64,000 nucleotides of DNA from Zygnema circumcarinatum SAG 698-1b (GCA_037447605.1 CM074811.1:3286001-3350000); one strand, 5' to 3'; positions 31,025 through 35,502 are shown, numbered from the stretch's first letter. The notes: generated from the sequence alone by a model not told the origin. Translations and numbers: made by a program.

Positions 31025-34000
31025 CTAAGAGTACTTAGCTCGCCAGCGAGCTCCGGGTCTATATGCGTCGTACACCATCCTGCTGATCCGTGCAATTACG
31101 GCCTCCGCTTCACGCTCATGGAACCTCCGTACATTGTCGACCAGAGCCGCGATTGCGACCCGGTTCATCCCCCCTCCCTGCTCAACCTCCACCACTCCGG
31201 CGGCGTTAATGACCCCCGTGATGCTCCCGGTCTTATGGTACACGGGGGTCCCTTTCGGAAGACATTTTGGGAGCCGGCGTTGACCGTATTGCTGCCACAA
31301 CATGGAACAGCTGGCTCAGTTACGGTTACAGTTACAGTTACAGGGGCTGCAGTTACAGTTACAGGGGCTGTAGTTACAGTTTCAGTTACAGGGGCTGTAG
31401 TTACAGTTTCAGGGGCTGCAGTTACAGTTGTTGAAGTTGCAGGTAACAGCATCCAGTCCGGAGGGGGAGCGAGAGAGAGAGAGAGGAAAAGAGAGAGCGG
31501 GAAGAGGACAAAAGAGGGGAGAGACGGATAGGAAGAGGGAGAGGGAGAGAGTGAGGGAGTGAGAGAGGGCGAGACAGCGAGAGGAAGAGGGAGAAAGTTT
31601 TTAGAATGGCGCCTTCCATTGATTTCCTCCTTTCTTTGCTGACCTGGCGGGAGAGGATGCCCATGCAATGGTCCGTCCAATGAGGCGACAACAGCTGTCC
31701 TTTTGCCAGCTGTGCAAACATCCGCGCCACGTCAGCAGGGCGGCCCATGTTGTCCACCGCCATGGCAACTGCTCCGGTCCAAAACCCAAAACATTAATTC
31801 GAATCAATGGAGGGACGGAGGGGGAGGACGAGAGGGAGGGGGAGAGAGAGGAGAAAGGGGTGAGGGAGAGACTTCGAGGGATCGGGGAAAGGAATGGAAC
31901 AAGAGAGAGAGAGAGAGAGAGAGAGAGAGAGAGAGAGAGAGAGAGAGAGAGAGAGAGAGAGAGAGAGAGAGAGAGAGAGAGAGAGAGAGAGAGAGAGAGA
32001 GAGAGAGAGAGAGAGAGAGAGAGAGAGAGAGAGAGAGAGAGAGAGAGAGAGAGAGAGAGGAGACGGAGAGGGCAATAAGAGGGTAATATTCACTCACCTG
32101 CTCTGTCTTCCCGATATTTCCGAGATCCCGCCATCTGGCAGCTCCCCATTGGCCAACACAAATCCCCATTTTTGCCAAATAAATTGCATAATATAAGGAT
32201 AGCCATTTTCTCAAACGAGAACTTAGCAACAAATCAAACGGGCAAAGAGGAGCTCAAGAGCACCAAAAAAAGGAAAAAAAAAAAAAAACGAGCATACAGT
32301 ACACCCCTATATTATGCTAATCGATTTATCCCTTTTTGCACCTTTTGGTTTTCTTCTGAGCGCCCCTCCATTTGAAACAAATCGGAAATTCGAAGAGATT
32401 TATTTACTTTCTCGGCCTCCCTCGCAACAGCTGTCCTTTCCTTGACTCCCAGCATTTTCCAGCTGAAATTTAACAAAAATTCAAGTTAGAACAGAACTTT
32501 AATGCTACAAGTTTTTTTAGAAAGTAGCAAATAAGTTTCTAAAGTAAGCCTAACCTTGCATTCTGAAACTTTTCAACTTCACAAACCCTAAACATGACGA
32601 AGGCGAAGCTGAATCAAAGGCCGAAAATGGACGATACAATCTTTATCTGTTAAAAAACGTAAAGTAAAAGGCAAAAACATAAGTAAAGTTCATACGTGTC
32701 TGCCAATTTTCGAGATGACATTCGGTTGAGCTGCGGAGCTTGACCCAAGGCTACTAAATATGCCTGCATAGATCACCAGCAAAAGATCCCAATAAAAATA
32801 CCTTTAAAAAATTGAGCGTTATTTTGAAACAGGGATAGTTCAGCACTGACGCTCTCATCCTTGGAGGCTGAGTAAACCGAAGCGAAATAATGGGAATATG
32901 GGATAGAAAGAGAGAGAGAGAGAGAGGGGGGGAGAGGGAGAGAGAGAGAGAAAGAAAACCCGAGTCCGTTTTTCAAGAAAATCATGGAAAACAGTGGCTT
33001 CACCTGCCGTTGAGACAAGTGAATATCAATACCGTCCAACTTCAAGTCCTTCATGCGTTGCCTCACTTTCTCCATTTTCACCACCCGAAGGACCTGAACA
33101 TTCAGGCAACCTCGACTACATACATTATCACGGTCGTTGAGAAAACTGAAACAAAAATCTAGGAAAGACGAAGAGAAGCCTCCCAATAATACACGTGGTC
33201 GAAGAATCGTATCTCTTTCAATTAATTCTAGTTCTTATTCTTCGGGTTTACGGCTCTTAAAATATTTAGAGTCAGAACCACTAGAGGGACCTCATTTTGT
33301 TTCAAACAACCGCCCTTCCTCTCTCCCTCCTTCCCCTCACCTCTCTCCCTGCTCTACCTGCCCTCTCTCCCTCCTCCCCCCTCCCACCTCTCTCCCCCTC
33401 TCTCCCCCTCTCCCCCTCCCATCTCACACCTCTTTCCATCCCAACTTTCCACCCCCCCTCCCTCGCCAAGTACATGGAAGGGGGAAAAGAAAAGGGCTTT
33501 ACCAAATCAGCTGCCGTATTGTCTGAAATGGTCTGCATTAGCTCCAAACATTCGCCAAATTTTATCTTTGTTCCCCTGCAAGCGTGCAGCTTTATCAGCC
33601 TACTTGTGGACGGGCTAGGAAATAGATATAAGGTGCAAAATAGAGGCAGTTAGAAACGTGAATACAAACTCATTTTTCACATTTTACTACAGTACCTACT
33701 AGTTTATCCTTTACATATGTCCGTACTCCATACTCTGCATATGTTTTATTTCAATGCGGTGAGAAGAAACCTGGGATATTTCCAAAGGCGGCCGCTACCA
33801 ATGCACTTCTCTCTCTCCTTGATGATAATTGGGGTATCCAATGAAAGTTCTCCGCCGACTTCCTGATGCCGGAAACGAAATGAAAAGAAGTTCAGAGTAA
33901 AAGAGAGCGGAGAGAAAAAGAGAGAGTGGGAAAAGGAAAGGAGCGGCAGAGAGTGGATAGAAATGGAAAGATAGAGGAGGGGAGAGAAAAAAAAAAAATG

Positions 34001-35502
34001 AAAGAACAAAATGAAAGAAATGAAAGAAGTGAGGAGTGAGAGGCGAGGGAAAGAGGGGAGAGAGTGGAGGAGAGAAAAAAGACAAACAAGGTGAGGGAGA
34101 AGGAAGGAGAGCGAGAGGAGAGGGAAAGAGAGAAGGTTAGGGGAGAGAGGCGAGGGAGAGACGAGGAGAGGGAGAAAAAGGGAGAAAGAAACGAAGGGAA
34201 AGAGAGGGAGGAGAGCACCTCCGAATGTTGCAATTGCTTCAGCGCCTCGACCATGATGGGTACTTTGGCTACACTAGCCAACGGAAAAGGCCGTTCCTTG
34301 CGAATGCCCGTTTCCTCTCCACTTACCAGGTGTATCACATGGACCCCAACGCGCATATTTCTACAAAAGAGCGCAGAGAAGCCAGGAAAAGCAAAATGGT
34401 AATGATCCCCCTGAAACTAGTCGATTTATTTTCTGTACGGTATGGTATGGTTTGGTACCTCACATTATTCATGGTTTGGGATTCGTATTCTATGCTACTA
34501 TGGTATGAAAGCTTATTAGCTTATGCTATATGTATAAAATTTAAGAAGGCAACGACTGCATTGAATGTTACGGTGGGTTATTGAATTCTGAGCTGGTTCT
34601 ACTTGTTTTTAACAAAGAGAGAAAAGGAGAGACGTGTGCAAGTCCTCAGGGCTTCTCGGCAAATATTTAAAAAGTTTCTTAAGCGCACGAGAGTATCTTA
34701 AAAAATAATTTCAATATCTCTTTAATGATTTTCAGCATTGTTCGAGGCCTTACTTCGAAGATTTTCCGAGATTCCCCTTGATAATTTTTTCCTTGTTGCA
34801 ACGTCTGCATAGGGTCTCTCACCTGTCCTGTGCAGCGACATAGCGCTGCAAAGCCCTCTGCAGACGTCGCTTGCGTGACGACACGTCACGCTTCGGCGGC
34901 AATACTCTAAACAACGGCTTCCATTCAGAGAGATTCCTTCTCCTCAATGGCTCCCCCTCCTCTCCTTCCTCCTTGAACCCACCTCCAAATGTTCTCAAAT
35001 TCTTCTCCAAACTCTCAGCCAAGGCTTTGATCTCCTCTCCTTCTCTTTCTGAATACGGGAGCTTGTCAGTGGACTCCAATGAAGAAGGTAGAGAGGAAGA
35101 GGAAGGAGAGATCAGCGGCAGAAGGCTGCTTGTCAGGGAGGCTGTCTGTGAGTGGGATGTCTTCAGAGTCCTTAGCGTTTCAGCTGTCTTTAGGGTTTCC
35201 GTATGCTGCAGAGATCCCACGGACTTCAGGGTTTCTGAAGGTTTCAGGGTTTCGGAGCCGGGAACAGGGCTCGGGGGCGCCTTCTTGAAAGCGAATCCAT
35301 GGCGGCCGGCGTTGCGGAAGTCCGAGACGGCGTCAAAGAAGCGCTGGTCGAGCTGGAGGAAGTCACAGGCTCCAGTGCGGGCCCGGCCATGGCTGCCGTC
35401 GACGAGCTTCCTGCAGAACAGCAAGGGGTGCTCGGAGGGGATGACACGGAGGAGGGCGCAGCCGGGGAGGTGAGGGTCCCAGATCCTGCCACTTGGCTGC
35501 AT
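31025..35502 (-). CDS. Class A serine beta-lactamase-fold (penicillin-recognising) protein with a 227-aa N-terminal extension, about 542 aa
   Basis: Ten phase-consistent exons 34823-35502, 34219-34360, 33771-33862, 33503-33575, 33004-33093, 32696-32763, 32408-32462, 32098-32134, 31644-31768 and 31025-31291 total 1629 nt. Motifs appear in class A order: FPLASVAK (SxxK), IGSGRL, MQTISDNTAAD (SDN), VDNMGRPADVA and VYHKTGS (KTG). The start codon is the least certain part. Confidence 0.85.
31318..31432. repeat. GTTACA-based minisatellite in the last beta-lactamase intron
   Basis: Repeats of gttaca(gtt) and caggggctg(c/t)agttacagtt. Confidence 0.75.
31903..32058. repeat. (GA)n microsatellite, intronic
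   Basis: Uninterrupted GA run of about 155 bp. Confidence 0.95.

Follow-up and report, generated by a model that had tools for sequence, protein, structure and literature searches.

The minus strand of the window (the whole 64,000-nucleotide stretch of Zygnema circumcarinatum SAG 698-1b analysed here, GCA_037447605.1 CM074811.1:3286001-3350000) carries a real nuclear gene, transcribed and intact, with 10 exons. This streptophyte is one of the conjugating green algae, and the domain that its gene encodes falls, judged by the sequence, in a distinct and undescribed long-omega-insert subfamily with the fold of class A beta-lactamases and PBP-A. The explanation that best accounts for the whole of the evidence, with a probability of roughly 0.6, is that the gene descends from an ancient transfer out of a non-cyanobacterial bacterium and encodes a penicillin-binding hydrolase of the DD-peptidase type rather than an efficient beta-lactamase. 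In the literature, no paper was found that treats the family in any eukaryote, algae included, nor one on the algal orthologues or the arrangement of the insert and its Glu.

Gene Structure and Transcription

The domain exons extend from 34360, the first base past an AG acceptor, to 31025, the final base of the TAG stop, and bear the SVAK, SDN and HKTG motifs in class A order, in agreement with the preliminary description, which had read these motifs across small spliced exons and whose limits proved exact. Its domain exons stand, but its count of eight introns inside the domain does not: an upstream tenth exon (35653-34823) contains the first AUG of the transcript (35502), downstream of an in-frame stop, and since this exon 0 codes for the first helix of the domain in addition to a 226-residue extension, nine introns touch the domain. 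The coding sequence comprises 564 codons, with a non-conserved leader of 226 residues followed by a PF13354 domain of about 340 residues.

Transcript contigs from four runs (X1-X4, two studies) were compared with 32060-35900. The introns are absent from these contigs, which give the joints 34823/34360, 34219/33862, 33771/33575, 33503/33093, 33004/32763, 32696/32462 and 32342/32134, and in all 4 runs a loose contig end at 32098 continues into 31768 (matching 31739-31768). Of the junctions for which the preliminary description had proposed a transcript check, eight GT..AG junctions are thus seen directly, and the exon 8/9 junction (31644/31291) is deduced from its canonical GT..AG ends, phase 0, continuity with homologues and a Closterium intron in the same column. 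Two features could not be read from the frame alone, namely the end of exon 6 at 32342, where the first GT (32407) is not used, and exon 7, of only 37 nt (32134-32098). On the 5' side, contigs reach 35653 in X1 and 35523 in X2-X4, and the length of the transcript contig (2449 nt) suggests roughly 600 nt of 3' UTR (to about 30420). The features are given below, with residue numbers calculated arithmetically from the coordinates.

34823..35653, minus strand: exon 0, with 5' UTR at 35653-35503 and start codon at 35502-35500; ends in phase 2; joint 34823 to 34360 in 4 runs; no Pfam match
34219..34360, minus strand: exon 1, strand beta1 and SxxK (S-V-A-K 34275-34264; Ser256, Lys259); joints seen; PF13354 1-41, E 1e-8, 35 bits; sequence match to LRA-5 in the PDB
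33771..33862, minus strand: exon 2, family-specific K-C-I-G-S-G (CIGSG 33805-33791); joints seen; CxGxG in at least 90% of 30 members
33503..33575, minus strand: exon 3, SDN at 33526-33518 (residues 322-324); joints seen; PF13354 71-93
33004..33093, minus strand: exon 4, ending L-S-Q-R-Q; Arg at 33009-33007 is the counterpart of class A Arg164, invariant (30/30); joints seen
32696..32763, minus strand: exon 5, start of the insert of about 85 residues replacing the omega loop; Ala at the class A Glu166 position, two residues past the Arg; joints seen, with alignments
32342..32462, minus strand: exon 6, insert core; Trp at 32461-32459 (29/30); Glu of 'FQME' at 32368-32366, residue 414 (30/30); joints 32696 to 32462 and 32342 to 32134
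32098..32134, minus strand: exon 7, 37 nt, end of the insert; ends in phase 1; joint 32342 to 32134; loose end into 31768 in 4 runs
31644..31768, minus strand: exon 8, D-N pair (Asp179 counterpart) and next helices; loose-end match 31739-31768; PF13354 131-167; Closterium intron at the same column
31025..31291, minus strand: exon 9, coding part, with HKTG at 31237-31226 (residues 495-498), C-terminal strands and helix, TAG at 31027-31025; PF13354 170-206; NCBIfam bla_class_A 185-256; 5' junction deduced
31902..32063, no strand assigned: (AG)81 microsatellite within intron 7

A Class A-like Fold with a Replaced Omega Loop

The Zygnema exons were searched singly and enter alignments and trees as separate exon rows, and the fold, NCBIfam and tree work was carried out at full length on natural orthologues used as proxies. 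Exons 1, 3, 8 and 9 match PF13354 (Beta-lactamase2) in order, at profile positions 1-41, 71-93, 131-167 and 170-206, exon 1 alone reaching 35 bits for a gathering cut-off of 22, and the exon pieces tile the family alignment with zero gap or overlap. Such a combination of colinear matches and gapless tiling in the sequence is far beyond chance. The Pfam search suggested by the preliminary description, together with the spliced transcripts, supports its reading of a penicillin-recognising serine fold of bacterial type in a nuclear gene rich in introns, the host being a streptophyte alga. A feature search of the Atlas with exon 9 returned PF13354 again and nothing further, and Pfam gave no match to the 226-residue leader, to exon 6, or to ten larger ORFs elsewhere in the 64-kb window.

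The motifs follow the Ambler class A order (Ser70-x-x-Lys73, Ser130-Asp-Asn132, Lys234-Thr/Ser-Gly236), and the omega region has counterparts of Arg164 and Asp179 at its neck, a likeness in fold and motif order to class A enzymes such as TEM, PER and CTX-M. In contrast with these enzymes, neither Glu nor Asn occupies the positions of Glu166 and Asn170, position 166 being Ala: the sequence after the Arg reads Q-A-Y-L-V-A in Zygnema and x-A-W-L-I-S in bacterial members, and then runs into the insert. The omega loop is replaced by about 85 helical residues (a five-helix insert) carrying an invariant Glu, and 174 residues separate SDN from KTG, versus 104 in class A. Against NCBIfam NF033103 (bla_class_A), whose cut-off is 200 bits, the scores of the full-length orthologues and of bacterial members lie at 95-122 bits (the Zygnema exons, taken singly, give 29, 12 and 37 bits). 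The set of residues that characterizes the subfamily comprises SxxK, CxGxG, SDNTA, the invariant Arg, R-x-A, the Trp and the Glu of 'FQxxE' in the insert, DN and HKTG, without Glu166. Zygnema has the long-insert family residue at 38 of the 40 positions conserved in at least 90% of 30 members, including all the catalytic ones and the insert Glu, a count read by eye (the automatic count, 34/40, placed the tail of exon 0 and the last part of exon 6 wrongly).

Among solved structures, the best match by both profile and structure is PBP-A (Tll2115 of Thermosynechococcus elongatus, PDB 2J7V/2J8Y), which represents a family of low-molecular-weight DD-peptidases in cyanobacteria. The family profile finds PBP-A at 7e-52 and, second, LRA-5 at 1e-46, each in two stretches on either side of the insert, and the AlphaFold2 (AF2) model of the closest full-length relative (the P0126 domain; pLDDT 95.4, insert helical throughout) has 2J7V as its best Foldseek match (TM 0.86 by target). 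PBP-A and the Zygnema protein share SxxK, SDN, KTG and the lack of a Glu at position 166. They differ in the omega region, which is shortened in the PBP-A type (SDN-KTG spacing 97-99) and expanded in Zygnema, and they fall in separate clades (100/100). An L158E mutant of PBP-A is present in the PDB, Leu158 being what we take to be the counterpart of Glu166. LRA-5, a class A beta-lactamase precursor recovered by metagenomics from soil in Alaska (PDB 8EO5), is the top PDB match of exons 1 and 9 alone and has, like the Zygnema protein, the class A fold and motifs without Glu166; unlike it, LRA-5 is bacterial and secreted, its omega loop has the usual length, and CxGxG is absent. Another eukaryotic case is LACTB of animal mitochondria. 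This serine beta-lactamase-like protein descends from PBPs of bacteria and is a member of the superfamily of penicillin-recognising serine hydrolases, but it belongs to the class C / S12 branch and not to class A / PBP-A, with another origin and lineage.

Relatives and Origin of the Gene

Orthologues of the same subfamily and architecture (a variable leader, then the domain) occur in Klebsormidium nitens (KFL_000850290), Chlorokybus (Chlat1 8846), Mesostigma (Mv09800), Spirogloea (SM000085S23201), Mesotaenium (ME000133S00545) and Closterium (CLOM_g13275), the Closterium proteins having an additional Pro/Ser-rich loop after HKTG. Identity per exon to Chlorokybus, Mesostigma, Mesotaenium and Closterium is mostly 30-72% (tblastn). 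The preliminary description had held that orthologues widespread and already characterised in eukaryotes would remove the novelty; since the annotation of these proteins is hypothetical or unnamed throughout and they are uncharacterised, it is reduced and not removed.

A search with exon 9 retrieved 125 relatives. The bacterial long-insert members are secreted and come from uncultured lineages, for the most part Eremiobacterota/Xenobia/Vulcanimicrobiota and Armatimonadota (the names they bear being Xenobia, Eremiobacteraeota, Vulcanimicrobiota or Armatimonadetes). Cyanobacteria were absent from the best 80 species-genome loci and from the named long-insert members, some gut and rumen MAGs being unclassified. 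In trees, the algal sequences form a clade (100/100) nested among bacterial members and following the species tree, each of the four Zygnema exon pieces is placed within it, and the long-insert family including the algae (96/96) is split from cyanobacterial PBP-A-type proteins (P0202, P0204, P0208, P0213; 100/100). Resolution of the algal clade's sister group is weak (87-90), so that any donor phylum named would be tentative. Around nine bacterial loci, the neighbouring genes (SIS, phytoene synthase, ClpB-like, HAD, DUF885, LRR, ZIP) form no conserved operon, include no wall genes and give no functional hint.

Intron positions, obtained with an exact-match exon finder because tblastn missed short exons in Klebsormidium and Closterium, are shared with Closterium (9/9) and with Klebsormidium (3). 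Removal of the introns in transcripts, monophyly of the eukaryotic copies among bacterial ones, a clade tracking the species tree and these shared positions are what is expected of a transferred and domesticated gene, and the long domestication supposed in the preliminary description is upheld. Of the two origins it had allowed, horizontal or endosymbiotic, the first is supported and the second is not: the clade lies among Eremiobacterota/Xenobia, Armatimonadota and other uncultured bacteria, apart from PBP-A. The pattern is that expected of a single, ancient transfer from bacteria and not of inheritance through the endosymbiont. A non-cyanobacterial bacterium would have been the donor to the streptophyte stem in a single event, after which the signal peptide would have been lost, and a variable leader and introns gained; vertical inheritance would have followed, the gene being lost, or undetected, in land plants. 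No land-plant copy was found by an exhaustive search with one 88-residue exon and by profile searches restricted by word matching, which overlooked some known members, and the same exon-9 and profile searches gave no copy in those mosses, ferns, glaucophytes or prasinophytes in which plastid peptidoglycan persists.

Mechanism and Possible Functions

In the mechanism that we propose, Ser256 would be activated by Lys259, with Ser322/Asn324 and Lys496-Thr-Gly, and would attack a D-Ala-D-Ala-like acyl donor to form an acyl-enzyme, as in PBP-A, the nearest characterised relative; beta-lactams should also acylate the Zygnema enzyme. Without the Glu166 deacylation base, it should act as a penicillin-binding hydrolase of the DD-peptidase type and not as an efficient beta-lactamase, and the invariant Glu of the insert could be a substitute general base. 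PBP-A is a DD-carboxy/endopeptidase acylated by penicillin, its proteins being described as confined to cyanobacteria (PMC11189452), and LRA-5, with Val instead of Glu166, is essentially inactive, with negligible turnover (PMC12777564). A penicillin-binding-type peptidase appears more likely than a beta-lactamase, the putative DD-peptidase activity being suggested by an identity of no more than 22-30% to PBP-A. Glu96 of PBP-A, a proposed selector of amidated muropeptides, aligns with a Gly of CxGxG in the Zygnema protein, so that the substrate may differ from that of PBP-A.

On what substrate, and in which compartment, would such an enzyme act? The Zygnema leader is poorly conserved and of low complexity, with no signal peptide and no hydrophobic signal, and the leaders of the algal orthologues show no sequence relationship to one another, their lengths varying between about 110 and 550 residues. 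Loss of the signal peptide, together with no clear organelle leader, is consistent with a cytosolic serine hydrolase of non-wall substrates (such as free muropeptides, peptides of D-amino acids, or a secondary-metabolism ester or amide), for which the insert would be a new substrate lid. This alternative, tentative as it is, survives best: the insert, large and conserved, covers the side of the active site, PBP-A's specificity residue has been replaced, and the gene is kept in algae and dispensable in land plants. However, the full penicillin-recognising motif set is conserved from bacteria to algae, which argues for an unchanged type of substrate, and no positive evidence points to another one.

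A somewhat more doubtful alternative is a D,D-carboxy/endopeptidase of plastid peptidoglycan, imported into the chloroplast envelope space, that would trim or cut cross-links during division and constitute a second beta-lactam target. The nearest characterised relative is indeed a DD-peptidase of cyanobacterial peptidoglycan (PMC11189452), and the gene is found in streptophyte algae, among them Closterium, whose chloroplast division is blocked by 100 uM ampicillin and also by D-cycloserine and fosfomycin (PMC3398972). By eye, the Chlorokybus and Closterium leaders have a Ser/Ala/Pro-rich look, but that of Zygnema has seven acidic residues among its first 61 positions and that of Klebsormidium is strongly acidic; neither looks like a typical transit peptide, and in Zygnema it is not a clear one. 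The lack of a detected copy in the peptidoglycan-keeping lineages and the non-cyanobacterial origin also stand against it. A more far-reaching and rather unlikely proposal is that streptophyte algae took a penicillin-binding DD-peptidase from soil or freshwater bacteria, rather than from the cyanobacterial ancestor of the plastid, and now use it on the thin peptidoglycan of their chloroplasts, where it would be a missing wall-remodelling enzyme of division and a direct target of beta-lactams, the invariant Glu of the new helical lid representing a third solution to deacylation beside those of PBP-A and class A.

It is improbable that the protein is a working beta-lactamase, in which the insert Glu would replace Glu166 and which would shield plastid division from microbial beta-lactams. 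The acylation motifs are all intact, the Glu is invariant (30/30) within the replacement of the omega loop, and the fold is near that of class A enzymes; against these points, the residues at 166 and 170 are missing, scores fall far under the class A cut-off (95-122 versus 200 bits), neither of the closest relatives, PBP-A and LRA-5, is a beta-lactamase (PMC11189452, PMC12777564), a secretion signal is lacking in the algal proteins, and Closterium is ampicillin-sensitive although it has the gene (PMC3398972). The beta-lactam hydrolase that the preliminary description had entertained is weakened accordingly. Contaminating bacterial DNA, a misassembly or a dead pseudogene, with nothing in their favour other than the bacterial affinity of the domain, are refuted by introns spliced out in transcript contigs from two studies, an intact frame, the 38/40 positions kept and introns shared with two algal genomes.

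Significance

Chloroplast division is beta-lactam-sensitive in streptophyte algae and early land plants, and to our knowledge few penicillin-binding proteins of chloroplast division are known. The Zygnema gene is a concrete, expressed candidate for such a protein, and part of the bacterial-wall enzyme toolkit of these algae would have come horizontally from non-cyanobacterial bacteria. The subfamily adjoins PBP-A and LRA-5, which are models for how beta-lactamases arose from peptidases, and brings to them something new, a helical module with an invariant Glu in place of the omega loop. Should the protein turn out to be an ordinary cytosolic hydrolase, the gene would still be a clear example of a gene acquired by transfer long ago and later lost from land plants.

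Gene structure and expression

The gene lies on the minus strand, where the motifs ASVAK, SDN and HKTG are read in class A order on open stretches, each bounded by AG and GT. Five public runs, from one organism and two studies, share words with the gene stretch (a third to half of the words each). The region 32060-35900 was compared with the transcript contigs of four runs labelled only 'RNA?' or '?', and all four yielded one long intron-free contig (1.5-2.4 kb). Since such contigs can derive only from spliced RNA, the gene is expressed. Every contig joint reads CT..AC on the plus strand, that is GT..AG on the gene strand: seven joints are read directly (34823/34360, 34219/33862, 33771/33575, 33503/33093, 33004/32763, 32696/32462 and 32342/32134), and an eighth (32098/31768) follows from a loose contig end at 32098 that runs on as the sequence of 31739-31768. 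The last junction, 31644/31291, is outside the compared read region and is supported by four indirect points: a canonical GT..AG in phase 0, a homologue alignment continuous across it, a Closterium intron at the identical alignment column, and a contig of 2449 nt, a length consistent with exons 8-9 and a 3' UTR of about 600 nt.

Exons of the gene model (window positions)
35653-34823, minus strand: exon 0
34360-34219, minus strand: exon 1
33862-33771, minus strand: exon 2
33575-33503, minus strand: exon 3
33093-33004, minus strand: exon 4
32763-32696, minus strand: exon 5
32462-32342, minus strand: exon 6
32134-32098, minus strand: exon 7
31768-31644, minus strand: exon 8
31291-31025, minus strand: exon 9, coding part (31644/31291 junction from indirect evidence)

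The transcript has its first AUG at 35502, with an in-frame stop upstream and no further AUG between it and the transcript's 5' end; the summed coding length is 1692 nt plus stop (564 codons). Exons 6 and 7, of 121 nt and only 37 nt, are both settled by RNA. The preliminary description, made from sequence alone, had proposed nine small exons carrying the three motifs. Motif order and splicing are confirmed, the limits 34360 and 31025 prove exact (exon 1 acceptor and stop-codon end), and the downstream exons stand, to which the contigs add the 5' exon 35653-34823 with the start codon, making ten in all. Residue numbers below were derived arithmetically from the coordinates, and each search with window sequence used one exon as query.

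Some features of the locus and its surroundings are recorded here. At 34952-35026, depth climbs from 72 to 105 in run X2, and a second contig there agrees with exon 0 only from 34952 upward before continuing for 255 unrelated letters; an alternative transcript, a paralogue or a chimera could account for it. A separate low-depth contig of run X4 at 35786-35900, just upstream of the 5' end of the gene, might belong to a neighbouring transcript or mark a start further upstream. An (AG)81 repeat occupies 31902-32063, intron 8 holds a minisatellite of GTTACAG / GGGGCTG(C/T)AGTTACAG units (31300-31440), and the other introns are mostly CT/GA-rich low-complexity sequence, resulting in long spurious ORFs on both strands. 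Elsewhere in the window, 40620-43845 holds two head-to-tail copies of a unit of about 1.96 kb, 100% identical across the compared stretches; each copy contains a GGGAGA-rich array, and its ORFs (157-159 aa) match nothing in Pfam. Either a recent tandem duplication or duplication in the assembly could explain the pair. At 56933-58402, extreme GC and AT skew and long artefactual ORFs are accounted for by a (GA)n microsatellite of about 737 units (1.47 kb).

Domain identity and the long-insert subfamily

Searched exon by exon, the product matches Pfam PF13354 (Beta-lactamase2) colinearly (exon 1 at 1-41, exon 3 at 71-93, exon 8 at 131-167, exon 9 at 170-206), with exon 1 alone reaching 35 bits for a cut-off of 22, which bears out the fold first proposed. 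The NCBIfam class A model likewise gives colinear matches, with low scores; neither the 226 residues encoded by exon 0 nor the 40 of exon 6 have a Pfam match. Against PDB sequences, exons 1 and 9 taken singly find the class A beta-lactamase precursor LRA-5 first (8EO5), exon 9 next matching the cyanobacterial DD-peptidase PBP-A (Tll2115, 2J7V; 3.5e-5), to which exon 1 matches weakly (E 0.44). A 30-member family profile ranks PBP-A best (7e-52) and LRA-5 next (1e-46), each match being split into two stretches either side of an insert. This insert forms five helices in the AlphaFold model predicted with the 30-member alignment for the domain of P0126, the closest relative (pLDDT 95.4, pTM 0.93). 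In Foldseek, PBP-A heads the matches to this model (TM 0.86 by target), followed by a protein of Sphaerobacter (4EWF) and by LRA-5. The best ESM Atlas neighbour covers 326 residues at TM 0.90, so that relatives have the insert fold too.

A motif scan and alignments of algal proteins and of bacterial proteins of 340-400 residues with signal peptides define the signature of this subfamily: PLASVxK, KCIGSG, SDNTA, and an invariant Arg whose next two residues, x-Ala, stand in place of class A Trp165-Glu166. Next comes an insert about 85 residues long, in which a Trp is conserved and a Glu ('FQxxE') invariant, and after it DN, another invariant Arg and HKTG. Of 40 positions with conservation of at least 90%, the window protein has the family residue at 38, among them every signature residue (two misplaced fragments were read by hand). 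Its SDN-to-KTG spacing of 174 residues is within the family range (166-176); class A has 104, cyanobacterial PBP-A-type proteins have 97-99 and another PF13354 group has about 140. Unlike class A beta-lactamases, the window protein lacks Glu166, and its full-length relatives score 95-122 bits on the NCBI class A model, below the curated cut-off of 200. It belongs to neither the PBP-A family nor that of LRA-5.

Six bacterial proteins of 600-680 residues (P0004, P0009, P0013, P0015, P0016 and P0054) carry two complete tandem PF13354 domains, with SDN and KTG about 140 residues apart in each; we know of no description of this architecture.

Algal orthologues and descent

An exhaustive HMMER search with exon 9 returned 125 representative proteins, the best being long algal proteins from Chlorokybus atmophyticus (P0001), Mesostigma viride (P0005), Mesotaenium endlicherianum (P0003, partial), Spirogloea muscicola (P0019), Klebsormidium nitens (KFL_000850290, P0164) and several Closterium species (P0007, P0008, P0010, P0012, P0241), together with P0126, a transcript contig of run SRR33208242. 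These orthologues are already in databases, though nameless ('hypothetical' or 'unnamed'), and no paper on them was found. Every window exon aligns colinearly with them, and the exon pieces fit together along the family alignment with neither gaps nor overlaps. The Closterium sp. NIES-68 orthologue (locus L082, 4621-22691) spans 24 kb owing to an intron of about 18 kb at the position of window intron 2, and its protein has a Pro/Ser-rich loop of about 65 residues after HKTG, absent in other members. P0010 (Closterium sp. Naga37s-1, 954 aa) shows long Pro/Ser-rich stretches between family segments, absent from other Closterium proteins; several introns seem to be retained as coding sequence in its public model.

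In maximum-likelihood trees (LG+C20), seven algal proteins form a single clade (100/100) inside the long-insert family (96/96), with Mesostigma and Chlorokybus as first split, matching the species tree; the four window exons that were included, each as a row of its own, group within this clade (SH-aLRT 100), nearest P0126. The bacterial sister group is weakly resolved (87-90), and cyanobacterial PBP-A-type proteins, stated to occur in cyanobacteria only (PMC11189452), are separate from the family (100/100). When one genome per prokaryotic species was scanned, the closest loci came from MAGs of Burkholderiales, Armatimonadetes, Eremiobacteraeota/Xenobia/Vulcanimicrobiota and gut and rumen bacteria without classification; the database members that carry a name belong mostly to Xenobia, Eremiobacteraeota, Vulcanimicrobiota and Armatimonadetes. 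No cyanobacterium with the long insert occurs among the best 80 species-genome loci, some of them unclassified gut or rumen MAGs, or among named members. Mapping of exons in the Klebsormidium and Closterium genes showed that all nine window intron positions coincide with Closterium introns, three of them also being found in Klebsormidium (one before MRVGV, one after the CIGSG stretch and one before the insert Trp).

Taken together, tree nesting and shared introns indicate that the gene derives from one old transfer from a non-cyanobacterial bacterium, with introns gained before these classes diverged and vertical descent thereafter. Of the horizontal or endosymbiotic acquisition first envisaged, the long domestication is supported by the single algal clade, its species-tree order and the shared introns, and the horizontal route is retained; the endosymbiotic one is disfavoured by the separate position of the cyanobacterial proteins. 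No land-plant, chlorophyte or glaucophyte member was found, a provisional result, since some known members escaped the word-limited searches and the window protein is itself missing from the database. The tree also hints at two lineages in Zygnematophyceae (Mesotaenium and Closterium; Spirogloea and P0126, with Klebsormidium), possibly reflecting a gene duplication.

Predicted activity and cellular role

The acylation residues are complete in the window protein (Ser256, Lys259, Ser322-Asp-Asn324, Lys496-Thr-Gly498), so that D-Ala-D-Ala-like substrates, and beta-lactams too, would be expected to acylate Ser256. Glu166, the class A deacylation base, is absent. LRA-5, also without Glu166, shows negligible turnover (PMC12777564), and PBP-A is a DD-carboxy/endopeptidase acylated by penicillin (PMC11189452). 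By analogy with both, and predicted to work as they do, the product is read as a putative penicillin-binding, DD-peptidase-type hydrolase rather than a beta-lactamase. The beta-lactamase activity initially suggested is unlikely, given the missing Glu166, the low class A scores of relatives and this comparison. Chloroplast division in Closterium is blocked by 100 uM ampicillin (PMC3398972) although the alga carries the gene, in circumstantial agreement with a protein that is not a beta-lactamase. The DD-peptidase reading is made less settled by two points: the invariant Glu of the insert might serve as a substitute base, and Glu96, the proposed specificity residue of PBP-A, aligns with Gly in the window protein.

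Bacterial members have signal peptides; algal members instead have leaders of about 110-550 residues, unrelated in sequence. The window leader, in which seven of the first 61 residues are acidic, has no hydrophobic segment, the Klebsormidium leader is strongly acidic, and those of Chlorokybus and Closterium appear by eye closer to transit peptides. The gene neighbourhoods of the bacterial members show no conservation and offer no clue to function. A plastid DD-peptidase role, as first proposed, is possible for the product, a hydrolase related to PBP-A and class A enzymes whose helical omega region is expanded and which became fixed in streptophyte algae following horizontal transfer.
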